A DNA stretch of 33,930 bases, from assembly GCF_000315625.1 (NCBI RefSeq), contig NW_005434407.1:19825-53754 (forward strand). The letters run 5' to 3'. Below the pieces are notes generated by a model that searched no databases, was not told the origin of the DNA, and worked only from the letters and a program-made list of their open reading frames with translations. Position 1 is the first letter of the stretch. Each line of letters starts with the position of its first letter. The translations under genes were made by a program, and so were the position numbers. This stretch comes from Guillardia theta CCMP2712 (Eukaryota; Protista; Cryptophyta). Of the stretch, positions 7,115 through 27,045 are shown in pieces.

Positions 7115-7150
7115 AAGCACTTAAGACTATATTGTGTACAATATATAAAT

Positions 7151-8482: not shown

Positions 8483-11343
8483 TTGATCTTCCTAAAGATA
8501 GCCCATCTGTTCAAGAAGCTGAATTCTTTAAGATTTGGATCATTATCCAATAGCTGAAGATTATCCTTGATATATTTATCGTTTGTGCTTGATATAGTTT
8601 TATTAAATGTGGTCTCAAACATCTCAGATGATTCTAATTTCAATCCAACCTCATTGCATTTATTTTCTAGGAGACTGAAACTGACAAGGTTTTCAGCAAT
8701 GAACTTTCCTGAATTTTCTATGTAGACATTTATCTGTTTTCCATAAGGACTTCTCTGGTTCTCTGAATAGTTCCTCTTGATTGCCCAAACAACTGCCTCA
8801 CTTGTCGGATCAATCCCAAGCAACGATCCATGGTTTGAATGCAATTTATCCTCAACGGTCTTTCCATCCATAAAGGTGCATATGAAGACACCATCCTTCT
8901 TCAGATTTGATACTACATTGTTGAGGAAGCCACCTAGGCTTGCCTCATCCTGGAAGAAATAGTGGATAGAGAACATGCAAGAGGCAACATCGAATGACAC
9001 ATTGTGATAATCATTAAAGATATTTAGATGGCTAAACTTCTTGTCTGAATAACCTCTCTTTCCTAAAACAATCTTCAAGATATCCTCACTTGTCTTATCA
9101 AGGCCCTTAGCTGCCTCTCCTGATTCTAGCTTATGCTTGCAATCCCCAATAACAAATATCATCGTTGGAAAATATCTATCCTTGTTTTCTTTTTTTGTCT
9201 TGTAATATTTGGTGAGCAATCTCTTGTATATACCACTCACAGGATTTTCTATGTTGTCTTTGACATAATCTACACCAAAGACAAACTTATATCGTGCAAA
9301 CATCCAACGATCTATATCAGAACCCTGACCACAAGCCAGTTCTATGATGTTTCCACGATTGCCTCCCTTTATAGCAGGATATTCATATAGCATGGACTTG
9401 ATTATCCTATTATGGAAGAAGATCATCTTAGATGATATAAGCTTGCTGCTATCCTTGTCATTGAACCTGTTGTAATACTTATCATCGCTGGACAGCTCAA
9501 CATCAATATCGCTCTCTGAAAATTCAATAGATGTCTTACCAGTGATCATATCGTATGTAATAGGCTTTGAGATAGAGCGCCATATGTTCATTGCCACATC
9601 CCAATCATTTGCAGTCTTTGTGATGGGACCTGATCCGAAGTTGTAGATCCTGTTCTTGTCATGTCTTATCCTGTTTGCAATCCAACGCCTCTCATTCGAT
9701 AACATCACATTCTGTGTATTGTATGAGAATTCAACCACGCTGTTGTTCAGTACAAGCTCATTTGTATCAGTTGTATAGCAATTCCCAGTATTCTCATTTA
9801 CTGCAATATGAGCCTTCTGTGCCTTACCCTCTAGAATGTACTCACGGAGCTCATAGATAGAATTCCTATTCCGTGGCTTATATCGCTTATCATATCTTCT
9901 TGTCAAGCCTGTCAATACATCAATCATCTCATTGTTCTCAATATTGAAACCAACATACAATTGGAATTCCTTGTACCTGCTCCCATCTCCATAGGTATGG
10001 AATATGCCCGTCTCCTTCACAATAAACTCGATTGTGTTCTGCTCGGGTGGTTTCCATTTGAATACCCTATCCCATTTCATGTTTGCAGAGACACTCACTG
10101 GCTTGTTTGCATAATAACCAAATACTGGGAGCTTCATTGGAGTGAATACCAGCCCATCAATCTTATAATTGTATGAACTGTGATTGCTTAAGATCTCATT
10201 GCACTTATCAAGGATTGTTTCTCCATCAGATGCATAGAGCTGTTGCTTAACCACAAATTCATGAGATGATGTAGTCTTCATCATGCTCACATGTTTCTTC
10301 ATTATATCATATCTATCGGGAATAAGAGGCAGGTCCTTCACAGATTTTCCATTTAGAAGATAAACATCGAATATTGCAAACAGATCATGCGTGGAATCGT
10401 TCTTGCGCTCTGAACATAAGACCAGTTCGCCATCAAATAGGCTATTCTTGAGTGCAGGTGCATTCAGGCCTGTGCCTCTCACATTCTTTATGTTGTTGAT
10501 AAGGAAGGCCTCACCATCTTTATCAACAAATAACAGGAACCTCTCTCCATCTGCTTTCTCACTCACTGCATAATTCTTCATAATAGATATATAGCCAAGA
10601 TTGTCAGCCCTTCCCATATTGATCCTCTCTAATGTTATGGGCTTTGGTGTGATCAATATAACATCATTTGTCATGGTCTGCAATCGATCATTCAGCATGA
10701 ATTTTATGCATGCAGAGTATTGATCTAAAACTGAATTCTGTTTTGCCATCAATAATGGCCGAATATTACCATACAATGCAAATTCCATCAGCTTGAGGGT
10801 TTCATCAATATCAATCTTGTTGTTCTTTACAACTATCTTGAAATAGTATGTGTAGTTTGCGAGCATGGCCTTGCTCTCTTTGAATGTTCTTGCAGGTCGC
10901 AGGCCATTCTTACATACCTCAACAATGTAATCACAATTGTCATCATAATATGTAACTCTTTTTTTGAGAGAGAAGGACTTTAATCCCTCATTTGAATAAT
11001 CTAATGCATCATTATTTGATAACTTGAAGAGGACTGCCTTGAATGCAGACTCGTAATAATCCTTGAAATTCTCTTCATAATCGATAACCTTGTGATATCT
11101 CTCTACACATTCCATGTTTCCTTGTGTATATTCTTTGATATCCGTAACTCCCTTCACTACCAATATTCCCTTATCATCAAGGATCTCTAATATCTGTTCA
11201 TCGATATCTCTCTTCAAATTTTTTGCCGAAAGAACATTATTGAACATATCAAAATTTGCACCATTGAGAAGACCATCAGAATATATAATCTCAAAGGTTA
11301 CATTAGACGAAGCATCAAACCTTTTTAATACCTCATCCATCAT
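8479..11343 (-). CDS. mRNA capping enzyme (divergent triphosphatase region + guanylyltransferase + cap N7-methyltransferase)
   Basis: GTase motifs SEKADGER, FDGELV, FAIFDVY, IDGLVFTP, KWKPPEQNT and RIRHDK; MTase motifs ELACGQGSD and CMFSIHYFF. First ATG is at 11343. Confidence 0.95.
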   Translation of the reverse strand: MMDEVLKRFDASSNVTFEIIYSDGLLNGANFDMFNNVLSAKNLKRDIDEQILEILDDKGILVVKGVTDIKEYTQGNMECVERYHKVIDYEENFKDYYESAFKAVLFKLSNNDALDYSNEGLKSFSLKKRVTYYDDNCDYIVEVCKNGLRPARTFKESKAMLANYTYYFKIVVKNNKIDIDETLKLMEFALYGNIRPLLMAKQNSVLDQYSACIKFMLNDRLQTMTNDVILITPKPITLERINMGRADNLGYISIMKNYAVSEKADGERFLLFVDKDGEAFLINNIKNVRGTGLNAPALKNSLFDGELVLCSERKNDSTHDLFAIFDVYLLNGKSVKDLPLIPDRYDIMKKHVSMMKTTSSHEFVVKQQLYASDGETILDKCNEILSNHSSYNYKIDGLVFTPMKLPVFGYYANKPVSVSANMKWDRVFKWKPPEQNTIEFIVKETGIFHTYGDGSRYKEFQLYVGFNIENNEMIDVLTGLTRRYDKRYKPRNRNSIYELREYILEGKAQKAHIAVNENTGNCYTTDTNELVLNNSVVEFSYNTQNVMLSNERRWIANRIRHDKNRIYNFGSGPITKTANDWDVAMNIWRSISKPITYDMITGKTSIEFSESDIDVELSSDDKYYNRFNDKDSSKLISSKMIFFHNRIIKSMLYEYPAIKGGNRGNIIELACGQGSDIDRWMFARYKFVFGVDYVKDNIENPVSGIYKRLLTKYYKTKKENKDRYFPTMIFVIGDCKHKLESGEAAKGLDKTSEDILKIVLGKRGYSDKKFSHLNIFNDYHNVSFDVASCMFSIHYFFQDEASLGGFLNNVVSNLKKDGVFICTFMDGKTVEDKLHSNHGSLLGIDPTSEAVVWAIKRNYSENQRSPYGKQINVYIENSGKFIAENLVSFSLLENKCNEVGLKLESSEMFETTFNKTISSTNDKYIKDNLQLLDNDPNLKEFSFLNRWAIFRKIN

Positions 11344-11395
11344 CAATTCTTACTTTAATAATATACAAAAATCTCTTATATGCTTCATTTTTTTA

Positions 11396-12002
11396 TCATA
11401 CCATATAGCTCTCTCCTTGATAATCTGACAGATTTATTACTGCTTTCCTATAAATGAAAGAGATATCAAGTACATATGATAAAAGACGGCACACATAGAC
11501 ATTCCATTTGTTCTCAACTATTCCTGTCATTACACTTGATGTTCCCTTGATGGTTAGAAACTTCTGGACCTCCTTGTTGTCAAGATATTTCTTGATATAT
11601 TCCATGACATATTCTTTGTCATTATCCAATCCTAAGAAATCTATCAAGAAATCAATCGGTGGAAGTTTCTTCTTCATAAGGGTTATGTTCTTCTTCACAA
11701 TCTTGATATTGTTTGTATCATTCACAATATTTTCATCAACCATTTTTCTTCAATCTCCTGCCCATCACATGGCTGGATCTCATCTCTTTCAATCTGTCGA
11801 TCATATGGCTTAATCTCATCTCTTTCAACCTGTCCATCACATGGCTTGATCTCATCTTCATATATTCTCTCTTTTTTGTATTCTTGTTTTTTGCTGTTGG
11901 TTGTTCTTTAATCAGGGACCATTTATGATAAATAGATCTCTGTGTTGGAATAAAATAATCAAATTCTTTTGTTTGATCAATTGCTGCTCTAATCAATTCC
12001 AT
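11396..12002 (-). CDS. Hypothetical protein, probably one gene split by homopolymer frameshift(s) into ORFs 11736-12002 and 11396-11743; contains a 36-bp tandem repeat
   Basis: ORFs overlap by 8 nt at a T5 run (11743-11747). A 36-bp repeat occurs about 2.7 times at 11762-11857. Confidence 0.55.
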
Positions 12003-12029
12003 GTTTTGTATATATTCTGCAAAGAATGT

Positions 12030-12518
12030 TTATATGGTTTGCCTAGACAATATGACATCATCGTATGTTAGTGTGTCTTCAATGAGCTTGTTTGTTGAGC
12101 TTGTGCATTTTTGAAATTTCTTTTTCATCAGATAGAATTTTGTGTTGGTGTTTGTTTTCTTAATCTCCTTAGTATCATCTTTCTCTGCATATTCCTCTTT
12201 GATCTCATCTTGAGCATTCTCTTGAACAATCTCCTCCTCACCTTCGGTGGCGCTAATATCCATGTTCAGATTTTGGCGCATGCTCTCATATTTGTTTATC
12301 TCCTTCCGAGATTCACTACAAAAATCAATATAGTGTCTGATCTTCAACAATACCTCTTCTGACAACCATGATAGATTAATAAAAACTCCATTGTTGTTCC
12401 TACTATATGATGTATTGCTTGAATGCAATATCTTAAATAATTCTTCAACCTCTGCAGTGCTCAATGTGTCCAATTCTGCCTTGATTTTCATACAGGTTTC
12501 CTTACGATCTTCATCCAT
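12030..12518 (-). CDS. NET/extra-terminal (ET)-like domain protein, NCLDV-conserved
   Basis: IKAELDTLSTAEVEELFKIL...SRNNNGVFINLSWLSEEVLLKIRHYIDF resembles the BET ET helix-helix-strand-helix pattern. ATG 12518 has ATATAAG 25 nt upstream. Confidence 0.6.
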   Translation of the reverse strand: MDEDRKETCMKIKAELDTLSTAEVEELFKILHSSNTSYSRNNNGVFINLSWLSEEVLLKIRHYIDFCSESRKEINKYESMRQNLNMDISATEGEEEIVQENAQDEIKEEYAEKDDTKEIKKTNTNTKFYLMKKKFQKCTSSTNKLIEDTLTYDDVILSRQTI

Positions 12519-12562
12519 CTTTATATAATATATCACTCTAAACCTTATATGGTTTGTCAGAT

Positions 12563-13303
12563 CTAATCATCATCAAAGTTAATATCATCAGCCTCATCTG
12601 GAAGATCATCAAATTCATCAATTTGCTCAATGTCATCATCGGCATCAATATCATTGTTGATCTCACTATCATCATCATCCTTATCATCGGTTGCAGACTT
12701 ATTATCATCATCATCATCCTCTTCCTCTTGCTCGATCTCTTCATCCTCATATTTAGGTTCTTCCTCGGTGTATTCATCCTTTTCACAAACAAAGTCTTGA
12801 TTGATCTCTTTATCATCCTTTATTATCTTCCCAATTATGTTGATGCATGTATCATTCAATTTGTATTTCTTTCCACCATACACCTCTACATTGACCATGT
12901 CACCAACCTTGAGAGTATCAATATCAATCTCAGAAACAATGCCCGCCGTGATCCTTGGGATTAAGAATTCGATGATTACATCACCATTGTAGGTATATTC
13001 CGCCTTTGCTGCTGTATGATTGATTGCAACAATACGGCTTCTCAACACTGTTCCTATAGATGGATTGCATATCTCTGCATTGCAAACAATATTGTAACAC
13101 AGCTGACCATTGAAATGCTGTTTGATAATCTCACCACCAGACCTCTTTATTATACTGACACTGCCCTTCTTGACATAGCCATGCTTCATGCACTTGCCCT
13201 CAATCTTGTCCTTTAATTTGCTCAACACCAATTCATTGATGTTTCTTTGTAGATCACTTGGAGATATATGGACAATAGTCTTGAATTTCACTAAAACAAA
13301 CAT
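12563..13303 (-). CDS. rpb7: DNA-directed RNA polymerase subunit RPB7 (E') with long acidic C-terminal tail
   Basis: KIEGKCMKHGYV...SIIKRSGG...CNAEICNP, followed by an S1/OB fold (LKVGDMVNVEVYG...INIIGKI). Confidence 0.88.
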   Translation of the reverse strand: MFVLVKFKTIVHISPSDLQRNINELVLSKLKDKIEGKCMKHGYVKKGSVSIIKRSGGEIIKQHFNGQLCYNIVCNAEICNPSIGTVLRSRIVAINHTAAKAEYTYNGDVIIEFLIPRITAGIVSEIDIDTLKVGDMVNVEVYGGKKYKLNDTCINIIGKIIKDDKEINQDFVCEKDEYTEEEPKYEDEEIEQEEEDDDDDNKSATDDKDDDDSEINNDIDADDDIEQIDEFDDLPDEADDINFDDD

Positions 13304-13352
13304 TGTTCTACTCTAATCTATATTATTATATATCATTTTTCTTTTACTCTTA

Positions 13353-13371
13353 TACACCTTTCAAAGGTCTA
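13353..13371. terminator. Intergenic inverted repeat (hairpin), possible transcript 3'-end signal or transposon footprint
   Basis: TACACCTTT-C-AAAGGTCTA (9-bp arms, 1 mismatch), 21 nt past the stop of ORF 13393-13830. Confidence 0.3.
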
Positions 13372-13392
13372 AAAAGAGAGCATGAATATTGC

Positions 13393-13830
13393 CTACCATA
13401 ATTCTTGAATATCATAAAGCATCCAACAGTGATCATGTTTTACAAACTTGAATTTATAAGGTTTCTTGTTGATAAGCACATTTGTATCATAGTCAAACAC
13501 CTGTACAATCTCATATTCTCTTATCATCTCTGGGAACATCAAATCCTTCTTTAGTGAGAACCGGAGAACACTATCTACGTCTCGTGTCTCCATGCGGCTT
13601 AGAAGGAATAGAGTGATCTCCTTTATAGTCTTGTAAGGAGAAGGCTTTACCTTGTAGTCAACAATGTCTGGATAGGTAGGAACCTCCCCTACAAAGAAGG
13701 AAGAGAAGATTATTGGGATAGGCCTTTGCGGGATAAAATGATTGTAAGGTGGCATATCATTCTGCTGCATCCTGAGTGCAAGCAGTGGTCTGGCCTTCAT
13801 AGGCATATGATTGATGTATAGAAGGCTCAT
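13393..13830 (-). CDS. Hypothetical protein; weak resemblance to DUF4864/NTF2-like algal proteins
   Basis: ATATAAG 32 nt upstream; C-terminal YKFKFVKHDHCWMLYDI. Confidence 0.6.
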   Translation of the reverse strand: MSLLYINHMPMKARPLLALRMQQNDMPPYNHFIPQRPIPIIFSSFFVGEVPTYPDIVDYKVKPSPYKTIKEITLFLLSRMETRDVDSVLRFSLKKDLMFPEMIREYEIVQVFDYDTNVLINKKPYKFKFVKHDHCWMLYDIQELW

Positions 13831-13934
13831 TGCTCCAACTTCATAAGTTATTATGATTTACTCTTATATGGTATATTGGTGTAAATACACAAGATATTCT
13901 AAATAGAGAACAAAATAAACATCACTAGGAATAA

Positions 13935-14444
13935 ATGTATAACTTTATAGAGCCTGTAATACTTAGTGGCACAGACGGTGTGATTACCTGTTTCAATCTC
14001 ATGATTGGATTAGGTGCTGCAGACTTTGACAAGAAACTGATAATGATCATAATTCTTATAGCAATCATTGGTGATTCTATCAGCATGGCTATCTCATACT
14101 TCAATAGCAAGCTGATGGAGACCAAACAGATATTGGATTGGGGGCTTATCCTTCATTCATTATACAATATACTAGCCTTTGTTTTCTTTGGAACACTATC
14201 CCTAGTTATATATCTATACATTACAGACAGACCAACAGTTCTCAATGCATACATATCGATAATCATCCCATTGTTGCTTCTAGGATTATTGCAGATGACC
14301 TATAGAAATGGCAAAGTATCTTTTCTTATAACACTCGTGCTTGGAATGATAGGATCTGTAGTATCATATGTTGCAGGAACTCTTATAAAGATTGTAAATG
14401 AGAGTGTAAAGGACAACAGTGATGTGATAAACAATAGTATATAA
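13935..14444 (+). CDS. VIT1/CCC1-family iron/manganese transporter-like, short form
   Basis: ILSGTDGVITCFNLMIGLGAA (TM1 Asp) and IGDSISMAISYFNS (TM2 Met); five hydrophobic segments. Confidence 0.8.
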   Translation: MYNFIEPVILSGTDGVITCFNLMIGLGAADFDKKLIMIIILIAIIGDSISMAISYFNSKLMETKQILDWGLILHSLYNILAFVFFGTLSLVIYLYITDRPTVLNAYISIIIPLLLLGLLQMTYRNGKVSFLITLVLGMIGSVVSYVAGTLIKIVNESVKDNSDVINNSI

Positions 14445-14466
14445 AGATTTATACAAAGGATTTATT

Positions 14467-14805
14467 ATGATTGCAAACAAACACATGATATTCCTAAGAG
14501 CAGCCGTAGATGAAGCCAACAAGTCAACTATGACAAAGAAACATGGGTGTGTGATCGCTTGCAACAATAAGATCATAGCAAGAGGTTACAATTTTAGATC
14601 AAACAGTCTTAAGTTGTGTTTCAGCATCCACGCAGAGGTATCGGCTATAAACAATGTTGATAAGCAACACACCAATATGAAGAACCTTACAATGTATGTT
14701 GTACGGATTGATAAGAACAACAACCTGATGAAATCAATACCATGTGAACGCTGTGAAAGGTACATACAAAAAAGAAATATAAAGCGGATATATTATTCAT
14801 TGTGA
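14467..14805 (+). CDS. CMP/dCMP-type zinc-dependent deaminase
   Basis: KHGCVI...RGYN, HAE and PCERC motifs. Confidence 0.9.
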   Translation: MIANKHMIFLRAAVDEANKSTMTKKHGCVIACNNKIIARGYNFRSNSLKLCFSIHAEVSAINNVDKQHTNMKNLTMYVVRIDKNNNLMKSIPCERCERYIQKRNIKRIYYSL

Positions 14806-15432
14806 TTATCTTCTTGGCGGATGGAGATCGGCCATAGAGCTTGCAAATGACTGTTCATCTGCAATCTCCTCTTGGATCTCACGCAATAGATTGTTAACCT
14901 CATCTGATACCTCTTCCTCGATTGGAACATGCACCAATAGCAGACCCTTTTGCATAAGATCTGGGACCAGTGTTCTTGTAAAGAATTCATTGGTTGTGTG
15001 TAGAGTTGTCTGAGCAATGACCGATCTCTCTTTGTATGGGATGCTTGTATCTGACAATAGAGGCAATGTATCTCGGATGCCCTTTGCTACATCCCTTATG
15101 AGGTTAGACATTGGAGCTCTCCCTTTCTTCATAGAATAATTCATAAGGCTGCTGAGACCTCCACCTGAAGCATTCAATGCCTTGATTGATTTTATGCTAT
15201 TGGAGATACGGCCAATCTTAAGATTTATCTGTATATATGAATTCTTGATCAACATCTGGCATATTGGTGTAATGTGTCTCTTGCATCTCTCTCTTTCTTC
15301 CCCTAATTGTTCAAACAGATTTGCAATATCATTCAGATCACTGCGTATCATCTTAAGGTACCCTCCTCCATTGTTGCCTTGACTTGGTGATGATCTATTA
15401 TGGCTGCTCATTGCTGTATTGCTTTTTTTCAT
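14806..15432 (-). CDS. Hypothetical protein
   Basis: Long ORF, first ATG at 15432; its stop abuts the deaminase stop. Confidence 0.65.
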   Translation of the reverse strand: MKKSNTAMSSHNRSSPSQGNNGGGYLKMIRSDLNDIANLFEQLGEERERCKRHITPICQMLIKNSYIQINLKIGRISNSIKSIKALNASGGGLSSLMNYSMKKGRAPMSNLIRDVAKGIRDTLPLLSDTSIPYKERSVIAQTTLHTTNEFFTRTLVPDLMQKGLLLVHVPIEEEVSDEVNNLLREIQEEIADEQSFASSMADLHPPRR

Positions 15433-15492
15433 TATTTTGATTATATGATACAAAAATATATAAACATTAGCTTTATTTTGTTATAAAACATT

Positions 15493-15906
15493 ATGTTGAA
15501 GGTTAAATTGCAAGATGGTGCTACAATCCCTAAAAGAGCAACAGAGGGGAGTGCCTGCTATGATCTCTACAGCAATGAAGAGGGCACAATTCCAGCCCAT
15601 TCTAGGAGAATGTTTGATACAGGAGTCTATGTTGAATTCCCTAATCAATTCATGTTGCAAATCCTGTCAAGGTCTGGTCTATCATTGAAACACGGGCTGC
15701 AGGTTGGTGCGGGGATTGTTGACTCAGACTATAGGGGGTCTATCAAGGTATTGTTGTACAATCACAGTGATAGTGCATATCATATTGAGAAGCACGACAA
15801 GATTGCTCAGATGGCCTTGATACACATTGAAACGCCTGACATAGAGGTTGTAAATGAGATAAATGATACCGATAGGGGTGAGAATGGATTTGGGAGCACA
15901 GGATGA
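15493..15906 (+). CDS. dut: dUTPase (trimeric type)
   Basis: Motifs SACYDL, SRSGL, GIVDSDYRG, KIAQ and RGENGFGSTG. Confidence 0.97.
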   Translation: MLKVKLQDGATIPKRATEGSACYDLYSNEEGTIPAHSRRMFDTGVYVEFPNQFMLQILSRSGLSLKHGLQVGAGIVDSDYRGSIKVLLYNHSDSAYHIEKHDKIAQMALIHIETPDIEVVNEINDTDRGENGFGSTG

Positions 15907-16191
15907 TCATGGATCGATGCGTTAAGTTTGATAAATTTTTTTTATCATGACACTCTGTATGAATATCTTGTAGACATCATATGATGATGTGTTGTGACAT
16001 TGCATTAGATCCTAAAATAAAAACACTGATGTAGATGACAACATACAACCTCAGAATACGCTTTCTTTCTATGGAAAATCTCTTTATATTATAATCATAT
16101 GCAGGCATGTTGAGGAATACTATATAAGAATAATCAACAATCATGTGCTTCAGACTAAAGTGTTCAAGAAAATATGTAAGATATCTAATAA

Positions 16192-17301
16192 ATGGACACT
16201 TTGATTTCTTCTCCAGAACCAGTTACTCTCAAAGAACAGATCATGTATAGGATAAAATGGGAACACAAACGCATTGTACATGAAGATGCTGTTGATTATC
16301 TCGAAAAAATCCTCCGCCAACTTGTGCAAGCCTTCATTGATGCTGCTGTTCATATCAAGGACCCCAAGTACAAGACAATGCGATTGGTTGATATGCTTGT
16401 TGGTATACAGATGATACTCAGTATTTCTTATGAGATGCCTGTAAAAACAAAGGTCAACCAAGTTATCAAATATTACAATTATCTTATCCATAAATGCAAT
16501 CTAACTGCAAATGCTGCTATGGCTAAAATGCAAGATATTGAGTTCAAGGCAAACACATTCCAAGAGATGTTCAAGAATTCCTATCCGAACATAAGGGTAT
16601 GCAATGAGGCCTATATTGCCCTACAAGCAGTTTTAGGCCTGATCTTGAGCGACCTGTTCAACACATTCTCATTTCAAAATGTGAGAAATGGATACAAGCT
16701 AGACTTTGTCAAATCTGTCATAGACAAGACCATCTCCTACAGGAATATGTTCTATAGACATAAATACGAACCCACATCTATAGAGATGGAGGCCTTGCCG
16801 CCATTGACAAAGAGCATTTACGACAATCTCATATCTAAGATCCGTGGAACTTGTAAACGGGTAGCACCCGATGCTATGCAACACATACAGTCTCTTGCTG
16901 CAGGCCTGTTGAATAGAATCCTGAAGATCATCCATAAAGACACCAAATGTTCACATGACTATGACTATCTTTATACGGTGCTGCATAAAAATATGCTTGC
17001 AAATCAGCTCTTGACACAGTGTTATGAGTCGTGGTTCGAAAATAATGATATATCATTGAAGACAATAGTTGAGCAGTTCAAGAAAGATACCAAAATCCAA
17101 CATGAGACCATTGTCATTTGGATCAATATGCTATCAGACCCACAGGCTCCAATATTGAATGAAAGCACCATATGGATGATCCATCTGATAGTTGAGTCAT
17201 ATATTATCAACATCCTCGATAAGTCTTGCACATATGCCAAATACATGCAGAGAGCTATCATCACCAGGAAATACATAGAGGTGGTCATGGAATATGTCTG
17301 A
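16192..17301 (+). CDS. Fused histone quadruplet, order H2B-H2A-H4-H3 (divergent)
   Basis: Four consecutive histone-fold-like segments: VHEDAVDYLEKILRQLVQAFIDAA..KYKTMRLVDMLVGIQMIL (H2B); IEFKANTFQEMFK..IRVCNEAYIALQAVLGLILSDLF (H2A); LTKSIYDNL..CKRVAPDAMQHIQSLAAGLLNRIL (H4); LNESTIWMIHLIVESYIINILDKSCTYAKYMQRAIITRKYIEVV (H3). Confidence 0.75.
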   Translation: MDTLISSPEPVTLKEQIMYRIKWEHKRIVHEDAVDYLEKILRQLVQAFIDAAVHIKDPKYKTMRLVDMLVGIQMILSISYEMPVKTKVNQVIKYYNYLIHKCNLTANAAMAKMQDIEFKANTFQEMFKNSYPNIRVCNEAYIALQAVLGLILSDLFNTFSFQNVRNGYKLDFVKSVIDKTISYRNMFYRHKYEPTSIEMEALPPLTKSIYDNLISKIRGTCKRVAPDAMQHIQSLAAGLLNRILKIIHKDTKCSHDYDYLYTVLHKNMLANQLLTQCYESWFENNDISLKTIVEQFKKDTKIQHETIVIWINMLSDPQAPILNESTIWMIHLIVESYIINILDKSCTYAKYMQRAIITRKYIEVVMEYV

Positions 17302-17490
17302 CACAAATAAATTTATATCTCATGTAAAGACTGCTTCAAAGGAGTAATCAATCTCTCCCAAAAATAATGTAGACTTTTATTGACTTTTATTTCTTTTTGT
17401 TCGTATTTGAATGGTTTGAGTATGGATCTATCTATATATTGCTGCTAGAAGAATGTTCAAATTCATTTATATGTGCACTCAAAAGATATC

Positions 17491-17796
17491 CTAGACACCA
17501 TCTTGGTTTGGGTCAAAGTTTAGGAAACATCTAAGCCATGTGATGTCCTTAAAGCGCTTAGGCACTATATGGGACCTAGGCTTCTTGTATGGCCAGCTAT
17601 AGATGCCAAGATCCTTGCATGCCTTTTTCAATGATGTGAGTGAGATTCCGAGAGTGTTAGCAGCATCTCTCTGTTTGAGATGAAAGAGCTGAGCGATGTC
17701 ATTATGTGTCAGACGGACAATCCTGCGTATATAGTGGCTTCTAATGTTTCTTCTGGGATATATAGATATGATATGCTTTTCAGGACTGTGATCCAT
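17491..17796 (-). CDS. RWP-RK domain transcription factor (RKD/MID/NIN-like DNA-binding domain)
   Basis: LTHNDIAQLFHLKQRDAANTLGISLTSLKKACKDLGIYSWPYKK matches the consensus L..YFHLP..EAAK.LG...T.LKK.CR..GI.RWP.RK. Confidence 0.9.
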   Translation of the reverse strand: MDHSPEKHIISIYPRRNIRSHYIRRIVRLTHNDIAQLFHLKQRDAANTLGISLTSLKKACKDLGIYSWPYKKPRSHIVPKRFKDITWLRCFLNFDPNQDGV

Positions 17797-18003
17797 GCTG
17801 GTTTTTATTCATGAATAAGGATATATCTTTATGTATTACAATCTATTTATCACAGAGGTTGGTCTTATAGCATCCAAACACAATTTGTTATGTATTTATA
17901 CATAAATGAGATAACACTCACTAAAGACTTCATTACATTCTGATTTGCTGCTTCGAAAATAAACAAATTGATATTAGGCAAAGAGTGTAATATAGTATAA
18001 ACA

Positions 18004-18813
18004 ATGGATCTCTATCAACAAAAATACAATGAGTTCTATGATATGTATAGGTTCAGCTGTGGCATTCAACAACAAGACATTGATTTTATAAATCGATGTT
18101 TCCTAACCAAGATCAAAAAGGAACCTTTTGAGATTGTTGTGATGTTTATAAAGCCTACAATACATTGCAATTACAACAAGGACAAAAACATATACAGGCA
18201 GATATTTTTTTCAGAACTTGATTATCTATGCAAACTTGTAAGGATAATCTATGTAACTCTATATAATGAAGCAAATGATGATAATCACAGAACAAAGATA
18301 TTGCAAAATATATTAGAGTTTATAGAATATATTTCTGAAAAAGAAACAATCTTCAAAACGCTATTGGAATGTTTTAGGACAAGCAGCATAGATCTCTCAT
18401 CTATTGTGAGTTTTGGCAATGAAATCATCTTCACAATAAAAGATAGATTGCTAAAACAGATGTGTATCGATTATGATATACAAAAGTATACAGAACACGT
18501 ATACATGAATGATGATCTCGCAACAAATCATAACATAAGGATTATGCAGGATGCAATATATGTATACATTGATAACACAGTGAAAAGAATGAGCTATAAG
18601 GCATTCAAGGACTTATTCATAAGCAATTTCCAGAAAAAGCTGCTGTATTTATACAATGTGATATTCTTTCCTAGACTTTCAAAGGAAGAGAGAGAGACAT
18701 TCCGCAATAACATAGTTAAAACAAGGCTTGATTATGAATTTACAAGTTATTACAACAAGGTGTTCAGGCCGTGGTTGCAGATGAAGAGTTTCTTCTTTGA
18801 TATCAGCATATGA
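18004..18813 (+). CDS. Hypothetical protein
   Basis: 269-aa ORF; AAATTGA 32 nt upstream. Confidence 0.7.
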   Translation: MDLYQQKYNEFYDMYRFSCGIQQQDIDFINRCFLTKIKKEPFEIVVMFIKPTIHCNYNKDKNIYRQIFFSELDYLCKLVRIIYVTLYNEANDDNHRTKILQNILEFIEYISEKETIFKTLLECFRTSSIDLSSIVSFGNEIIFTIKDRLLKQMCIDYDIQKYTEHVYMNDDLATNHNIRIMQDAIYVYIDNTVKRMSYKAFKDLFISNFQKKLLYLYNVIFFPRLSKEERETFRNNIVKTRLDYEFTSYYNKVFRPWLQMKSFFFDISI

Positions 18814-19038
18814 TATCTGCTGTTGCCAAGCTTACAAATTTTTTATGATTTATGTGATATCAAACTTGAATAAAGAACAAACAAAATAACTACATAATGA
18901 TTTTGTTCATTCGAATATCATACATCTGTACACCAATTATCCGAACTCGCCTCACTAAAATATAAAAGAAACAAAATCCTACCTTTGTAAACAAATTTAT
19001 ACCCAAGGGGTTGAAGAGCATATCTTTGCTGTTGATCC

Positions 19039-19722
19039 TTATCTCAATCCACACAATATGTCCATATTATCATACATAGAGATCTTATCTTTCAACAACA
19101 ATATGTCAGCTGCAGAATACATCTCTAGATACTTTTTTTGAGCATAGTAATCCTTTCTGTTATAAACATTTAATGAGGGGTCTCTGTCGCTCTTTATTGG
19201 CAAATTTAGCGCCTCAGATATCTTTCTCACTATATTGAAATGGTCATCTAGTAAATCCTCATATTTAATATACAAGGATCTTCTCATTCTCTTGCTTATG
19301 TCAAACCAATTATTGTACTTATTGAAATACATATCATAAACATTTTTATGGTTTCTATTTATCATACAGTCATTAAACATACGACTATATTCATTTAACC
19401 ATGTATCTGTCTCGTACAATTCAACATCTCCTTTTATAAATGACTTGAAATCATCTGCAACTTTTGTTAAACCGTAAGGCTTATTGAATATTGATACAAG
19501 CCACGACTCAATGTTTTTCGAGATTATCAATAATATAGCGTTATCCCTCTCTAACCTTTTATACTCTTCATCTGATAATTCACCATGTTTCCAACCATAG
19601 TACCCATCTGCATCCAATCCAGATTCATTTATATTCTGATAATCACTCTCAAAATATTTCTCAACTATCTTCCTTAAAAACTTAGTTCCAGTATTCCTCT
19701 CTCCTTTTATACAAAAAATCAT
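19039..19722 (-). CDS. Sulfotransferase-family protein
   Basis: 5'-PSB loop GERNTGTKFL, GWKHG, 3'-PB-like ISKNIESWLVS and IKYEDL. Confidence 0.75.
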   Translation of the reverse strand: MIFCIKGERNTGTKFLRKIVEKYFESDYQNINESGLDADGYYGWKHGELSDEEYKRLERDNAILLIISKNIESWLVSIFNKPYGLTKVADDFKSFIKGDVELYETDTWLNEYSRMFNDCMINRNHKNVYDMYFNKYNNWFDISKRMRRSLYIKYEDLLDDHFNIVRKISEALNLPIKSDRDPSLNVYNRKDYYAQKKYLEMYSAADILLLKDKISMYDNMDILCGLR

Positions 19723-19887
19723 CTTTTATATATGAAATAAAAACAAAATTGATGTTTTTATCACATGAATTATTTATGGATCTGATATCTCAATGCTCAT
19801 GGACCTCCTTCAAGGCATTCATACGGATAGCTCCTGACGCACACCTCGCCTTGCTAAGGTTTGTTTGTAGCCGTTTGAATATTTCCT

Positions 19888-20100
19888 CCCTTGAAGGTTT
19901 AAAATGGACACTTCTGGTAATATGACTCACCTTAGCCTTGATCTCAAAATTAGAGCTATTTAACACTTTCTTACAAATCAAAACTATATGGAAACTTCTG
20001 AACTCTTCTCAGTTCCAAGAACTACCCTTATGCGTTGGGTTCAAAAATACCAAGATGACCAGACTATTGCTCGGAAGAAGAGAGAATACACAGCCCATTA
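19888..20100 (+). mobile_element. Truncated, pseudogenised IS630/Tc1-like transposase (N-terminal HTH only) with candidate left end
   Basis: ATG 19922 reads MTHLSLDLKIRAI*HFLTNQNYMETSELFSVPRTTLMRWVQKY..ARKKR, with in-frame TAA at 19961. No DDE domain follows. CCCTTGAAGGTTTAAAATGGACAC lies at 19888-19911. Confidence 0.6.
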
Positions 20101-20102
20101 CT

Positions 20103-21845
20103 TTATGGATTATCTTGAGAAACAGGTTGTAGATTATCTAATTGCTGCACTAGAAACAAATAGTGTTCCCGTAAGATCTGTCTTAGACTATGTGCTGTGT
20201 TGTCCTCAATACCTGGATTGCGCAATATTAGTTGTTGAATGAAGGATTGCATCGAGCTCATAATGCTGTTTTGATTTGTGATCAGCATGCTGAAGAGCAC
20301 GTTTATGTTATTGAGATCTGTAAAAGAATGCCTTTTAGATGTTGTGTGAATTGTGCAATGCACATACCTGTTTGCAGATTTATAGGTAGGACCTGCTGCG
20401 TATTGGCTTCAGGCCTTTGTCTCGTTGTTTTTTTGCGTTTCTCTGCAGAGCAAGATTAGTTGAGATAGGATATAATCATCCTGAATACTCTCAGGTGGAT
20501 TGTCTGTTGGAGCTTGCTTGTCGATAGCCTGCTGTTTATTTGCCCTCCTCTTGAGGAGTTCTGTTTGAAGGGCCTCTGCTTGAATAATCCTTCTCTGGGT
20601 AGGTTCATCTTGCTCATAGCACGGATACTGCTGCTGAGGGTCTGTGTTTGATTGGATTGTGCACTCCTCGTTTGCATGTGCTTGTGCTTGTGCTGCTTGA
20701 ATAGATGTCAATAAATAGAGAGAGCATGTGATTTAAGGGCTTACACAGCAGAAAGTCCTTGTAAGAGCCGCTTGGCTTGTCAAGATTGGATAGTGCATGA
20801 TCTATAAAATTAGAAACCTTAGAGCTCCCTTGTGATAAGGATATCTCCTCTGTAGGGGTGTTGTCATCCCTTATATATGGAGCAGCAGAGGGTATTGTGT
20901 AATTGCTTGTTTCCTGCCCATCATTGTCTGATTCTTCCAATCCTGTCCTTGTATCATCATTAGCTGCTTCTTGGCTGTCTGGCAGTTCATCAATCCTATC
21001 AAAGGATGGTTCACTGCTTATATTGATATAAGATATGTCCTTGTTCATGCTAGTGAAAGATGTGACGTACGCATCGTAGATCTCCATAAATCTTGAGGCA
21101 TCACCACATGGTTTTTTCCTTATATCATTCCAAAAATCACTCTTATTGAAGAATTCTTCATTGGTGCATACAGGTTCCAACAGGCCCATGAAATTCTTGT
21201 GATAAATCTCGTGAGGTTCCTCCATAACTCGGATAAATGGGCACAGCTCCTTGAAATAATGAAAGATAGATATGAAAGATGGCAGCTTTCTTATTGAGAT
21301 CCATTCTATGATAGGATAGTCCGGATTTGTCATCTCAATGTATGGGTTGTACCATTCCGTAAGAGCCATGAGGGTGTTGTTGAACATTACAAGATTGTGC
21401 ACTATTTTCGGATGAAGCCCAATATCAATAAGATGCTGTGGATGATCATTTATAGGATAATTGTTGAACATGTGCAAGGGCAACCTATTTCCCTTCACAA
21501 ATGGCACATAGAGATTTCTTGTAAGGAAGAAGCAATATATATGATAGTCTGTCAATTGTGAGAGTTTAACCTGCTTGGATTTATGTCTTATCAATACATT
21601 GCCACCTTTCTGTTCTAGATAGAATGTCTTGACCTTGAACATTATATTGTCATGATCAGACATGAATGCATTTATCGGAATAAGGATGATTTCATCCACA
21701 TTGTCACAAGAGAACTGGAACAGGTATACAATGCTCTCAATAGCATAATTACATATGCTATTATACCGTATCACCTCCTTGAGGAGCACACTGAGGATTG
21801 ATGTTGTTCCTAACAGATGTATAGTAGATGTCTCTCTCCAGAAAC
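20103..21845 (-). pseudogene. Fragmented large hypothetical gene (ORF pieces 20614-21936, 20409-20711, 20103-20363)
   Basis: Three consecutive or overlapping same-strand coding-like pieces in different frames. The 5' end collides with the DUF4116 gene without an intergenic region. Confidence 0.45.
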
Positions 21846-23568
21846 TTGCTGTGCTTTGCAATATGCAAGTGAAGACCTGAAAAGAGATAAAGAGGTTGTG
21901 ATGTGTGCTGTCAAAGGACACGGTTGTGCATTGCAATATGCAAGTGTAGATTTAAAGTGTGATAGAGAGGTTGTAATGTGTGCTATTGAAAGAAATGGAT
22001 GTGCTCTTCAATATGCAAGTGCAGACCTAAGAAGAGATAAAGAGGTTGTGATGTGTGCTATTCATAATGATAGTTCTGCTCTAAAGTTTGCAGATGAAAC
22101 AATAAAGGATGATTATGATGTTATCATAAAAGCAGCAAAAACATGTAGATTTAGTTTAACACACATTACAGATAAAGCAAAGAATGACAAAGAGTTAGCA
22201 TTTCGGCTTGTAAAAATCAATAGTGATAATATGAAATATTTATCTGATAAGTTAAAATGTGATAAAGATATCATTGTAGAAGCTGTTAAAACAAAACCTT
22301 TCTATGTAAAGGATCTAACAAATGAACAAAAGAACAATAAAGAGCTAGTATTGGAGCTAATAAAGCATTCTATATACACAATTCAATTTGTGTCTGATAA
22401 TTTGAAAGATGATTATGATGTTGTCATAGAAACTGTTAAAAGAGATGGAAAATTCCTTAAAGAGACATCTAGTAGAATGAGAAAGAACCATGATGTTGTA
22501 TATGAGGCAGTAAAGTCATCAGACGGCAGCACTTTTGAATTTGCCGACAAGACCTTGAAGGCAGATAGAGAGTTTGTTGCTAGGTTAGTCGAAATTGATG
22601 GAAAAAGTCTATTGTTTGCTGATAGAAGCATAAGAGATGATGTTGAATTGATTGTAAAGGCAGCCAGCAAAAACAGTTGGTACAAACAATATCAAGACAA
22701 TAAAACATTTATTGATAAGGTCTTATCATCCGGCAGGTGCATGTTTAGAAAATTCATACTAGCTATATTTAAAGGCAAGGAAGCATTATTGCATGATGAT
22801 AATATAATAACGAAACTAGTTTCAAGCAATGGCATGTTATTGGATATTGTACCATTAGAATTAAGAGCAAAGAGGCATATTGCACTTGCAGCTATTGAAC
22901 AATGTGGGATTGCATATGCATTCGTGCCAGAGACATTAAAACAAGATAAAGAGATAATTATGGCAGCACTCAAGAATTACCCGCCTATATTTGGGCATAT
23001 ACCTGAAACAATGAGAAATGATAGAGATATAGCACTAGAGGCCATAAGGGTCAATAAGACAGTTATCAAATACATCCCTCTAGATATAGTATATGACACA
23101 AAGTTTATTTTGAAAATATTATTGCATAGGCTGGTTACAAGCTCTGATTTAAAGTCATACAATACTGGTGTATATCATATCGTGCTTCATTTTGTTGATA
23201 AGCTAATAAATGGTGAAGACATGTTCGAGTTTGTCATGCACATAAAGGGTTTAAATGAAAAAGCAGTCTGTGATATGATACTTACCAACCTTGATTGCTT
23301 TCTCGAATCTGATTATTGTGGCAAGGTGTTAGAATTCTTCCTAAAGTACTATTACACAACCCTGCTAAATCACAATATTGCACTCAATCTCATTTATAAC
23401 AATGAGGACGCACTATTGTTCCTAGACTCAATAAATGTGAAGCTCTTATCATTGCGTGAATTAAACCCCGACCATGCTTATGACGATAGTGAAGTTATGA
23501 AGCATATGATTCAAAAGCACCATGGTAAAGATGTGTTATTTTTGGAGCTAGCAGGATCTATGAAATAA
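21817..23568 (+). CDS. DUF4116 repeat protein, possibly 5'-truncated
   Basis: Many roughly 25-aa repeats of the form GCALQYASxDLKxDKEVVMCAV; the first three are near-identical 75-bp units. Confidence 0.88.
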   Translation: MYSRCLSPETCCALQYASEDLKRDKEVVMCAVKGHGCALQYASVDLKCDREVVMCAIERNGCALQYASADLRRDKEVVMCAIHNDSSALKFADETIKDDYDVIIKAAKTCRFSLTHITDKAKNDKELAFRLVKINSDNMKYLSDKLKCDKDIIVEAVKTKPFYVKDLTNEQKNNKELVLELIKHSIYTIQFVSDNLKDDYDVVIETVKRDGKFLKETSSRMRKNHDVVYEAVKSSDGSTFEFADKTLKADREFVARLVEIDGKSLLFADRSIRDDVELIVKAASKNSWYKQYQDNKTFIDKVLSSGRCMFRKFILAIFKGKEALLHDDNIITKLVSSNGMLLDIVPLELRAKRHIALAAIEQCGIAYAFVPETLKQDKEIIMAALKNYPPIFGHIPETMRNDRDIALEAIRVNKTVIKYIPLDIVYDTKFILKILLHRLVTSSDLKSYNTGVYHIVLHFVDKLINGEDMFEFVMHIKGLNEKAVCDMILTNLDCFLESDYCGKVLEFFLKYYYTTLLNHNIALNLIYNNEDALLFLDSINVKLLSLRELNPDHAYDDSEVMKHMIQKHHGKDVLFLELAGSMK

Positions 23569-23712
23569 ACCTGTCTAATGTAAGACTGTAAAATTTTATC
23601 ATTGAGACATTCATAATTAGTCATAAAACCATGTGCATTTTCAGGTATTTTAATAGCATTTATATAAAAAGTGATTTGAGAAAATGTTTGTTCTTTATAT
23701 ATAATTCCCGAC

Positions 23713-24233
23713 ATGACTACAAGGACTATTTACTGTTCTTCACCTAAATTCGATGAAATTTATAAAAAGATAAAGCAGAGCTATCCCAATTGTTGTCTGT
23801 TGTATGTGGAAGAGATATTCAATGAAGAGCTTGAAGCAGCTTATCAAGAACATAAGAACAATATCATGCAAAAGCGTGGTTTTGTGAATGAAGCGAAAAT
23901 GTTCCATGGAACAAATGAGAATGCAAAGAAAAGTATTATACAGAAAGTTTCGATCCTAAAATGAACAAGGTAAGTGCCTATGGCATAGGTACCTACTTTC
24001 ATATTCAAGCCAATTATTCAAAGGACTATGCTCCACCAGGTAAGAATGATATATCCTACATATTCCTTTGTGACGTTCTTATTGGAAATAAAAAGGTAGG
24101 CAAAAATAATGAAGTGATTGACACAGCAGAGTATGACAACTTTACAAATCATAATGAATCCATCGTTGTTACACCATATATGAATGGTGCAGTTCCCAGA
24201 TATTGTGCTGTTTTCTACAGGAACGCAAAATAA
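23713..24233 (+). CDS. PARP-family catalytic domain (likely mono-ADP-ribosyltransferase), frameshifted at about 23947
   Basis: MFHGT in ORF1, and SAYGIGTYF, YSKDY, IFLCDVLIG and PRYCAVF in ORF2. Adding one G at 23947 gives SIIQKGFDPKMNKVSAYG. Confidence 0.85.
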
Positions 24234-24330
24234 TACACGTTTGATTCTTATATGACAAGCATATAACAATAACAACTAGCAAATGTTCATAAGAGATAAA
24301 AATTTGGGAGTAATTCTTTATTTTTATTTA

Positions 24331-24978
24331 CTACAAATCTCTTATGCGCTCTTCACACTCTAGCCTTCTTCTCTTGTGGCTGCATTGTTCATCTTCAACC
24401 TTGCAGTCCTTGCAATCATGCCTTTTGTTGTTGTGGATGCAAATAGAGCCCCCTTTACACTGTATTGTTGTATTATGCTCACATATAGAACTACCTCCAC
24501 AGTCCTTGCAATAGCTTCTAAATATGTTATGCTCACGTATGGATCTGCCTTTACACTCCTTGCATTGGCGCCTTTGTCTATTGTGATGACATATTGAGCC
24601 ACCTCCACATTCCTTGCATACACTTCTCACTCTATTGTGCTGACATATTGAACTTCCTCCACACTCCTTACATTGGCTCTTTATTCTATCATGTGGACAT
24701 ATTGAACCACCTCCACACTCCTTGCATCGGTTCTTTATTCTATTATGCTGACATATAGAGCCACCTCCACACTCCTTGCATAGGCTCCTTTGTCTCTTAT
24801 GCTGACATATAGAGCCACCTCCACACTCCTTGCATCGGCTCCTTTGTCTCTTATGCTGACATATAGCACTACCGCCACATTCCTTGCATTGATCTTTTAC
24901 TCTGTTATGATTACAGTATCTCTTACAGGTCTTACATTCACCTATAGTTCGATTGTGTTTACAGATATTGCTGTCCAT
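24331..24978 (-). CDS. Cys/His-rich 18-aa repeat protein (CxHxRxRxxCKECGGGSI), putative zinc-binding; paralog 1
   Basis: About 9-10 repeats of 54 bp. ATG 24978 aligns with the paralog start and has AAAATGA 34 nt upstream. Confidence 0.85.
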   Translation of the reverse strand: MDSNICKHNRTIGECKTCKRYCNHNRVKDQCKECGGSAICQHKRQRSRCKECGGGSICQHKRQRSLCKECGGGSICQHNRIKNRCKECGGGSICPHDRIKSQCKECGGSSICQHNRVRSVCKECGGGSICHHNRQRRQCKECKGRSIREHNIFRSYCKDCGGSSICEHNTTIQCKGGSICIHNNKRHDCKDCKVEDEQCSHKRRRLECEERIRDL

Positions 24979-25137
24979 AATGCAGTGTTTATTCAATAAA
25001 GATAGAAGATATTCATTTTACTACAAATCTTTTGTACATTCTTGAAAATTTAGATTCCTTCTATTGTGGTTGCATTTCTGGAGAGAAACAAAAGACACAA
25101 TGAATAAAAACGAATTTGTTGATGTAAGCTTTTCTAA

Positions 25138-25851
25138 TTAGAATTTATTGTACAAACCATTGATAATCCGAGTCTTATTATCGAATTCATTGAACAATTC
25201 ACGCAACATCTCTCTAAGCTTGATCAAATCAGTATTTTCAGTGAACTGATTCTTGAATTCCCGAAATTGGGTCATGAAGCTAGCATATATATCGGTCTCT
25301 TTCTTTATTTCGATGTTTTGATGCAACACATTGGTATAGTTATTTAGAAGGACTTGTTGATGCTCTGGAAATTTTAGATCATTCCTCATTGTCTCTATCC
25401 ATCTGTGCATATCTTCAAGATCCTTTTCTTTATTCACCAATATATAATTCAAAGCAACTATCTCATTCTGAAGTTTTATATTATTCTCTTGAATGTTATA
25501 GATGTTGTTATCTACTAGAGATTGCGATTCAGATGCTCGAAATCTCTTATTTGTATCGTTATTATCATCTTCTGTTTTAAATCTCTTATGGAACCTATCT
25601 TTTATCTCTTGGACAGCTTGTTTTGTCGAGAAATGTGTATAATCACAATATCTGTTCTTGCACAACTCTTGATCACGGCATGGTTTATGTTTCTTGCTGC
25701 ACTTTGTTGGACAATGATATCCAAATTCACATTCACCACGCCGTTGTCTACGGATCCTATCAATCTCTGCTTCATCGTGTGAGAACCTGCACTTATCAGA
25801 TTGACAACCAAAATGATTTACACGGTACCAACAATATGTTGAAAAGTCCAT
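25138..25851 (-). CDS. Triple CCCH zinc-finger protein with C-terminal coiled coil
   Basis: C-x8-C-x4-C-x3-H, C-x5-C-x3-C-x3-H and C-x5-C-x4-C-x3-H fingers. ATG 25851 has AAAAATGA 30 nt upstream. Confidence 0.75.
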   Translation of the reverse strand: MDFSTYCWYRVNHFGCQSDKCRFSHDEAEIDRIRRQRRGECEFGYHCPTKCSKKHKPCRDQELCKNRYCDYTHFSTKQAVQEIKDRFHKRFKTEDDNNDTNKRFRASESQSLVDNNIYNIQENNIKLQNEIVALNYILVNKEKDLEDMHRWIETMRNDLKFPEHQQVLLNNYTNVLHQNIEIKKETDIYASFMTQFREFKNQFTENTDLIKLREMLRELFNEFDNKTRIINGLYNKF

Positions 25852-26268
25852 TGTAAGTTGGATAAGAGATATGAAACGCATTCATTTTTGAAGCAAATTG
25901 TCAAATTTTGTGTAAGGATCCCACGTTGATCAATATTGAGATACACATAAAGAGATATCGAAATTCAAAGAGAATTTTACAAAACAAAGGATCTTGTTGA
26001 GAGATATCTTAGCAATCTAAACATCAAAACTCTTGATATTTCAGATTATGAGAGAAACATAAAACACCTGAATGCAAATCCCATAACAAAATCAGTAATC
26101 ATATTATATCTGATATGCAAGGATAAAAACAAACACTTCATCACATATACAAGATGGTTGGTGCAAGCACGAAATATGTAAGACCAATATTAATCAACAT
26201 TTCAACATATATTGAAGAATTTGAAACAAAAATGAGATAGTGTGATGGCGTAGCAATCACCACAAATA

Positions 26269-27045
26269 ATGTTGCATTGGCATAATGACTATGAACAAGT
26301 GATAGAAGTCCTAGATAGAACAATTCCACAATTCCCAACAGATGTTTTAGATAAGATCAAGAATTATCTGCATGCATATTATTGTTGTACATCATACATT
26401 CCAAATTTCAACAAATCTTTCAAATATAACAATAAAACGACAGCAATCGGTGGATGCAATCCAAATGCCATAAGAGATATTATAAATAATGCAATAGAAG
26501 TTGTGGATAATTCATCAGCTATATCAATTCGGTTTGTGATTCTAGCAACCTTGAAAAGTTTAAATTCTAACAACAAGAAAATAAGAATTCTATTTGATGA
26601 TATTGATTATATTATAGAATCAAACTTTGATGATAATTTGTATGATCATAATGATGATTATAATGAATTCTATGAGAAATACAATGAGATGCACAGATTG
26701 CTATATGACTCTGCTAGATTGATAATATGCAGCAGCATATTTATATGGTTTGCATCAAAAAAGCATGATAGTTTAAATCATTATTTTAGAAAGTTGTACA
26801 ATCATATTCATTTATTTAAACTTATAATATATGAAATAAATCTATCACATAGAAGGATTTGGCCACAAAAAGAATCTCTATTTAAACCAGAAGACAATCT
26901 GGATTGCTTTAGATTGAATATGTTCATCTTTCGTTCATGTGGATTAAAAGATCAACCTACATATAATCCTCTAGTGGATATAGATATTGATTATAATATG
27001 TATGTAGAAGATTTGGAGAATGACATCAAGAATATTCAAGAATAA
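26269..27045 (+). CDS. Hypothetical protein, possible N-terminal F-box-like motif
   Basis: IPQFPTDVLDKIKNYL; AAAAATGA 33 nt upstream. Confidence 0.65.
   Translation: MLHWHNDYEQVIEVLDRTIPQFPTDVLDKIKNYLHAYYCCTSYIPNFNKSFKYNNKTTAIGGCNPNAIRDIINNAIEVVDNSSAISIRFVILATLKSLNSNNKKIRILFDDIDYIIESNFDDNLYDHNDDYNEFYEKYNEMHRLLYDSARLIICSSIFIWFASKKHDSLNHYFRKLYNHIHLFKLIIYEINLSHRRIWPQKESLFKPEDNLDCFRLNMFIFRSCGLKDQPTYNPLVDIDIDYNMYVEDLENDIKNIQE

Follow-up and report, generated by a model that had tools for sequence, protein, structure and literature searches.

The 33,930-nt stretch of the Guillardia theta CCMP2712 genome assembly analyzed here (hereafter, the window; contig NW_005434407.1 of GCF_000315625.1) carries an intact, unannotated gene for a small RWP-RK protein, located amid DNA that resembles that of a giant virus. 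The window corresponds, in the same orientation, to positions 19825-53754 of the 53,754-bp scaffold JH993231.1 (GCA_000315625.1) and runs to the scaffold end, and the gene occupies 17491..17796 on the minus strand. We moderately favor the explanation that an RWP-RK factor of a cryptophyte family was captured by an algal mimivirid-like giant virus and acts as a functional mimic of the host's own regulators. According to this explanation, the 101-amino-acid (aa) product would be a minimal, putative sequence-specific DNA-binding protein and either a member or an offshoot of the expanded family of small RWP-RK proteins of Guillardia/Hanusia-type cryptophytes. The virus would have taken the gene from such a host (a direction of transfer that we infer), and the captured gene would then have adopted the viral base composition. 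During infection, the viral copy would presumably occupy the same DNA sites as the host regulators, with a consequent, likewise presumed, effect on the host. A functional mimic appears most likely because the whole architecture of the family, i.e., the N-terminal strand, the helix-turn-helix (HTH) core and the C-terminal Trp/acidic motif, has been kept.

The gene is an uninterrupted open reading frame (ORF) with an ATG start, and the ORF list and an exact-protein look-up showed that it is unannotated in the source assembly. A first-pass annotation of the window had described the product as a compact protein with a full RWP-RK domain, and a search with the Pfam model confirmed this clearly. The RWP-RK profile (PF02042) matched residues 29-75 (17572..17712, minus strand) over positions 2-48 of its 49, with E = 5.7e-16 and a score of 58.6 bits, i.e., about twice the gathering cutoff of 29.3, and helices of the HTH type are predicted across the domain. 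No second Pfam domain was found in the 101-aa protein at E <= 1, apart from weak, overlapping HTH-type matches, and Pfam detected neither the PB1 domain nor the long N-terminal GAF-like region of NLP/NIN-type proteins. The motifs named by the first-pass annotation were all recovered on the minus strand: IYPRR at residues 12-16 (17749..17763), SWPYKK at residues 67-72 (17581..17598), and DITWL at residues 84-88. The first is a hydrophobic-PRR motif that lies outside the Pfam model and is common to the cryptophyte relatives; the second replaces the canonical RWPxRK signature; and the third begins a C-terminal Trp/hydrophobic-acidic motif that runs from DITWL to the acidic end (residues 84-99; 17500..17547). 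A six-frame search with a profile built from 82 relatives found a single RWP-RK copy in the window, which contains no N bases.

Within the signature, W68 was invariant and P69 and Y70 were at least 90% conserved among the 82 aligned relatives. Since signature positions 1 and 5 also vary in clear family members (K/R/E/S/H/Q and R/K, respectively), SWPYKK falls within the variation of the family. In the N-terminal motif, P14 and R15 were at least 90% conserved in a 21-sequence alignment (A1), as was R15 in the 82-sequence alignment (A2), and a PR(R/K/H) motif occurred at the matching distance, ~50-55 residues before the WP, in most of the top single-domain matches and in 82 of 202 proteins scanned. 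An AlphaFold2 model built with the 82-sequence alignment gave a predicted local distance difference test (pLDDT) score of 89-95 across residues 9-70. In this model, a strand at residues 9-12 (pLDDT ~90), which directly precedes the PRR triplet, is paired with a second one at residues 27-30, and this two-strand element is followed by helices at residues 31-35, 42-49, and 53-63. Because the modeled strand packs on the domain, the PRR flank is probably built into an extended domain as a structural element. The modeled fold is of the HTH type, and the best structural neighbors in the PDB, none of them significant, were all HTH DNA-binding domains (RpiR-type, Fis, NtrC, TyrR, Trp repressor, and homeodomains). 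There is no solved RWP-RK structure; PDB sequence and fold searches gave no significant match, nor did the viral structure library BFVD give a significant fold match. The C-terminal tail was modeled with low confidence; its recurring motif consists of Asp, a hydrophobic residue, any residue, Trp, and another hydrophobic residue, followed by Phe/Tyr and acidic residues. When tested by local alignment against shuffled tails, this motif scored z > 3 in 12 of 181 relatives, comprising two named cryptophyte proteins, five environmental viral proteins (with Phe for Trp), and five unlabelled ones. The PRR flank pointed out by the first-pass annotation is thus at least 90% conserved in relatives, while the DxxW-type motif recurs in a subset of them.

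To place the protein among its relatives, 1.84 billion representatives were searched exhaustively with HMMER (E <= 1e-3, without a length limit), yielding 763 homologues, none above ~56% identity. The top total scores belonged to proteins with multiple RWP-RK domains from Chlamydomonas incerta, Vaccinium, and a pedinophyte, because scores sum across domains. The organism was looked up for 30 clusters taken from the best matches and nearest neighbors; 22 of these were Guillardia theta or Hanusia phi, and five are without an organism label. Every labelled single-domain homologue (22 of 22) came from these two cryptophytes, in agreement with the first-pass annotation, which had likened the PRR and DxxWL flanks to those of the expanded cryptophyte family. 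Two further H. phi proteins were obtained by a profile search, and the H. phi protein P0009 aligned to residues 10-99 of the query. No close relative was returned by an exact-protein look-up or by a word-based search with candidates limited to 0.55-1.75x the query length.

Identities were compared over 50 trimmed domain columns. The window protein had a mean identity of 53.5% to 24 labelled cryptophyte sequences, a figure inflated by the fact that the labelled set consists of the best matches to the query, and the cryptophyte sequences averaged 53.0% among themselves (per-member means, 45-58%). Its mean identity to a family of environmental viral proteins (see below) was 42%, and that to green-lineage matches was 40%. 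The protein departed only once, by a conservative Arg-to-Lys change, from columns that are at least 80% conserved in the cryptophytes. Small, uncharacterized single-domain proteins of G. theta and H. phi (P0009, P0010, P0011, P0026, and P0032) showed 45-64% domain identity and, like the query, have an N-terminal PR(R/K) strand and an HTH core with WPY; a subset of them also shares the C-terminal Trp/acidic motif. The query differs from these relatives in the first residue of the signature, which is Ser rather than Arg or Lys, and is shorter than most of them (80-250 aa). Green-lineage proteins of the MID and RKD types are similarly short, with little beyond the RWP-RK domain, whereas the green-lineage matches recovered here were multi-domain proteins with ~40% domain identity to the query. 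In the green lineage, MID determines mating type, RKD proteins act in gamete and egg fate, and NLP/NIN/NIT2 proteins act in nitrate signaling; since orthology is not shown, these functions are not transferable to the query.

The DNA surrounding the gene resembles that of giant viruses of the algal mimivirid type throughout 977..33930 (scaffold 20801-53754), with ~35% GC and a coding density of 81% as counted from ORFs of at least 90 aa. It encodes a PNK-like kinase (3815-4681, plus strand), a TATA-binding protein (TBP; 5665-6534, plus strand), a three-domain mRNA capping enzyme (8479-11346, minus strand), an Rpb7-like subunit (12563-13303, minus strand), a dCMP deaminase (14467-14805, plus strand), a dUTPase (15493-15906, plus strand), a DUF4116 repeat protein (21817-23568, plus strand), and a sulfotransferase-like protein. 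None of the following core markers of nucleocytoplasmic large DNA viruses (NCLDV) lies within the window: major capsid protein, family B polymerase, packaging ATPase, and VLTF3. Scans for tRNAs and Rfam families were negative across the window. Public annotation of the scaffold is eukaryote-style and comprises five genes over 22 kb. For example, the capping enzyme (public product P0207, L006) has an annotated length of 731 aa, counted from an internal start, against 955 aa for the ORF and 930-1000 aa for full-length relatives. The relatives of this enzyme are of environmental origin, and the contigs that encode them are in many cases very long (up to 527 kb). The closest two, which differ from one another, are 66-67% identical and come from sequencing run SRR23967302 (L009 and L010); the rest are at most 49% identical. 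The relatives L009, L010, and L011 span 47-67% identity. Local gene order in L010 matches that of the window: a convergent ~450-aa gene overlaps by 4 nt and is followed by a ~110-aa gene. The RWP-RK gene was not present on L009, L010, or L011, contigs that are short or without the syntenic side, and no syntenic relative was found in viral contigs by way of the capping enzyme or of the 369-aa ORF that neighbors the gene.

The first-pass annotation had called the gene virus-encoded. The mimivirid-like DNA and virus-like composition bear this out in part; however, the DNA sits in a host genome assembly and may be either an endogenous element or a co-assembled virus. A gap of N bases in the scaffold directly precedes the window, and no host-virus junction is readable from the window. 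Mimivirid-type genes within a eukaryotic genome assembly are also a feature of the giant endogenous viral elements of algal genomes. In a 2017 survey, the RefSeq proteins of G. theta yielded a single NCLDV core marker, of Mimiviridae-like type, and the H. phi transcriptome was among those with NCLDV matches (PMC5294986). Because of that core-gene match, giant-virus DNA in the G. theta assembly was known in outline, but the RWP-RK gene is not mentioned in the survey.

Base composition also separates the gene from its host counterparts. The ORF has a GC content of 0.425 and a third-codon-position GC content (GC3) of 0.47, within the range of the other genes in the window (0.28-0.44 and 0.24-0.54, respectively). 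Two host paralogue loci have 50% and 56% GC, and the gene spans have 0.56-0.57. One host paralogue, P0011, listed by NCBI as a G. theta CCMP2712 protein, is located on JH993048.1, in the same assembly (GCA_000315625.1) as the window's scaffold. There, the translated match is split in two inside the domain and the gene span exceeds the coding length, both of which would fit a short intron; no interruption occurs at that site in the window's ORF. The RWP-RK gene has most likely taken on the viral base composition.

A de novo k-mer count of the 120 nt upstream of ORFs revealed a promoter-like octamer, AAAAATGA, in 10 of 32 regions versus 0.65 expected. Counting both strands, the window has 12 copies of it, nearly all of them 23-45 nt before ORF starts, including those at 5665, 7151, 11346 (minus strand), 13303 (minus strand), 26269, 28156, and 29998 (minus strand). 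The same octamer has been published as a putative early-promoter element in Aureococcus anophagefferens virus (AaV) and lies one mismatch from the early motif of mimivirus and Cafeteria roenbergensis virus (CroV) (PMC5917014). A TATAAG-type motif was enriched as well (11 regions versus 2.4 expected), at distances from the genes that vary widely. The RWP-RK gene is separated from a head-to-head ORF (18004-18813, plus strand) by a divergent intergenic region of 207 bp (17797..18003), where TATAAG occurs at -73, and the early-type octamer was absent within 200 nt upstream of the gene, even when one mismatch was allowed.

A second virus-borne RWP-RK family emerged from the profile search, which found ~40 clusters of environmental proteins (P0124 and P0161-P0199) of 105-145 aa with the three-part layout. 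Their contigs, from Tara and other marine samples, are dense, mostly ORFan, ~22% GC, and up to 114 kb long; one member lies in an IMG/VR giant-virus metagenome-assembled genome (GVMAG-M-3300027833-31_000001). The RWP-RK genes were located at 10001-10372 of L001, 10001-10345 of L003, and 8534-8893 of L005. Two such contigs had AAAAATGA at 25-47 nt upstream of 15 of 26-27 genes versus 0.8 expected. In L003, the octamer stands 30 nt upstream of the RWP-RK start. In L001, the start codon as called is contained in an octamer copy; relative to the start conserved in the family, that copy would be positioned ~30 nt upstream. Like the query, these proteins are virus-borne, small, and single-domain, with the three-part layout and on contigs that share the octamer. 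In contrast to the query, to which their domain identity is ~42%, they have PR(V/L)Q rather than PRR at the N-terminus and Phe for Trp in the C-terminal motif, and their genes do carry the early-type octamer. The environmental contigs are mimivirid-like, and RWP-RK genes are thus seen here in two mimivirid-like lineages. It is conceivable, if rather doubtful, that small RWP-RK regulators are a recurrent tool with which algal mimivirid-like viruses take over host nitrogen-starvation or gamete/sexual programs, which are under RWP-RK control in other algae; the first-pass annotation had likewise suggested that the virus may reprogram such genes.

Several observations weigh against capture of a cryptophyte regulator, in addition to the composition of the labelled set in the identity comparison. 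In a neighbor-joining tree of the 50 domain columns, the protein fell among cryptophyte and unlabelled sequences, but no placement survived 200 bootstraps and the immediate sister was unstable; since the tree lacks bootstrap support, it does not establish that the protein nests among the cryptophyte sequences. No close relative of the gene turned up when viral and metagenome contigs were scanned by pattern, which leaves its carriage by circulating viruses hypothetical. An early host-reprogramming factor might also be expected to carry the octamer that is missing here. Considering that approximately half of AaV early genes lack the octamer and 22% of its late genes have it (PMC5917014), its absence is weak evidence on the timing of the RWP-RK gene. 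Finally, the protein collection, including proteins derived from G. theta transcriptomes, contained no near-identical protein, and there was no sign of expression in culture.

The last of these points makes a silent relic a serious alternative, since no transcript-derived protein matches the ORF. In that case, the window would hold an endogenized, transcriptionally inactive fragment without present function, and the ORF would be intact because the insertion was recent. The DNA is indeed in the host nuclear assembly, the ORF is unannotated, neither an identical nor a near-identical protein is on record despite the G. theta transcriptome proteins, and the single NCLDV core marker of the 2017 survey (PMC5294986) hints at a partial element. 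On the other hand, the 81% coding density, long intact ORFs, and conserved promoter-like octamers speak against a relic, as does the retention of all but one of the conserved domain residues. In addition, annotation is sparse (five genes in 22 kb), so marker counts made from annotated proteins underestimate the viral content. We therefore consider a silent relic unlikely, but with an appreciable chance of being correct.

A viral regulator that acts on viral rather than host genes is also unlikely, and to a degree that places it after the relic. Such a protein would control non-early viral genes or be packaged with the genome beside a chromatin-like neighbor. The neighbor in question is an all-helical ORF of 369 aa (16192-17301, plus strand), which is tail-to-tail with the RWP-RK gene across 189 bp (17302..17490), a convergent region in which scans found no terminator or hairpin. 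The first-pass annotation had identified it as a histone quadruplet; the convergent arrangement stands, while the quadruplet is unconfirmed. Pfam Histone matched the last ~42 residues below threshold (E = 0.011 with the whole protein and 0.043 with the last quarter), PDB sequence searches with the whole protein and two quarters returned no histones, and a single-sequence AlphaFold model, though all-helical, was unusable (pLDDT 37). Its length and helical content are compatible with a histone quadruplet, and the paper that defined viral histone quadruplets mentions neither Guillardia nor endogenous elements. A role on viral genes would agree with the tail-to-tail position beside a possible DNA-packaging protein, with the absence of the early octamer from the RWP-RK gene, the 369-aa ORF, and the dUTPase alike, and with the presence of TBP and Rpb7 in the window. 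Transcription factors of their own are common in giant viruses. However, the full-length likeness to host regulators, which includes motifs outside the domain, better fits host targets shared with them; the AaV data make a missing octamer little informative on timing (PMC5917014); and the distance of the TATAAG-type motif varies too widely among genes to lend this role support.

The first-pass annotation had also suggested that the protein could be a dominant negative, i.e., a stripped-down domain that competes with and blocks host RWP-RK factors. At 101 aa and with RWP-RK as its sole domain, the protein fits this description, but its host relatives are just as minimal (80-250 aa) and share the three-part layout, and the C-terminal motif and all but one of the conserved domain residues are retained. 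Since the viral copy shows no loss compared with its host counterparts, a functional mimic is likelier, and a dominant-negative role is improbable. Transfer in the reverse direction, by which giant-virus genes seeded the small cryptophyte RWP-RK family, earns very little credence. It would draw on the two separate mimivirid-like lineages that encode small three-part RWP-RK proteins, on the NCLDV-like sequences reported in G. theta and H. phi data (PMC5294986), and on the unsupported placement in the domain tree. Against this, the host family is large and diverse and is spread over many large scaffolds with host-like GC and split gene structure; another cryptophyte has been reported to have 56 RWP-RK genes, and the virus-like window has one copy. 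Lastly, although the scaffold comes from the host assembly and the nearest relatives are host genes, misassembly of a host gene into the viral region, or its insertion there after integration, was rejected as very unlikely: the flanking sequence is continuous, with viral-type genes on both sides and no N bases or composition break around the ORF, which is uninterrupted, is 0.425 GC versus 0.56-0.57 for the host paralogues, and has no host paralogue above ~56% identity. The misassembly that the first-pass annotation had considered is largely refuted by these continuous flanks and this composition.

Other features of the window were also recorded. Positions 1-976 comprise 2.9 tandem copies of a 332-bp unit (63% GC, 97% matches) that abut the 35%-GC viral-type DNA, and each unit contains an imperfect inverted repeat of ~100 bp. 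This array could be the terminal repeat of the element or a host repeat at the junction, and it had no exact match in viral contigs. A 169-aa ORF (13935-14444, plus strand) matched the N-terminal part only of the profile of VIT1, a member of the vacuolar iron transporter family, which is unusual viral cargo. A possible gene fragment is the 90-aa ORF at 23961-24233 (plus strand): its match to the PARP catalytic domain falls slightly short of the cutoff and is confined to the central part of the profile (positions 81-135 of 199). Two ORFs on the minus strand (24331-24996 and 27201-27806) contain ~8 copies of a 54-bp (18-aa) repeat that are ~79% matching; neither has a Pfam match, both have the early-type octamer, and the pair probably encodes paralogous repeat proteins rich in Cys and Gly. 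The longest interval free of ORFs of at least 90 aa spans 891 bp (19723-20613; GC 0.39, with 0.42 in the bin 20001-21000) and holds an 84-aa ORF whose N-terminus looks like an HTH and for which Pfam finds nothing.

The RWP-RK family, the capture of host genes by giant viruses, and NCLDV-like DNA in G. theta are already known. What appears to be new is the occurrence of an RWP-RK factor in giant-virus DNA, its tie to the expanded family of the host, and the second, widespread viral family; in the literature searched, no paper connected RWP-RK factors with giant viruses as viral genes. The finding points to gaps in the annotation of a reference genome in wide use, where this gene is missing and a viral scaffold is poorly covered. 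It also provides a concrete virus-host link for cryptophytes, whose giant-virus isolates have been reported only recently, along two independent lines: the location of the DNA in the G. theta assembly and the probable capture of a member of a lineage-specific host family. If small RWP-RK regulators do prove to be a recurrent viral tool, the G. theta copy would be the first viral RWP-RK with a known host. If such proteins act on the nitrogen or life-cycle regulons of the host, they would represent a new viral route by which algal physiology, and blooms, are steered.

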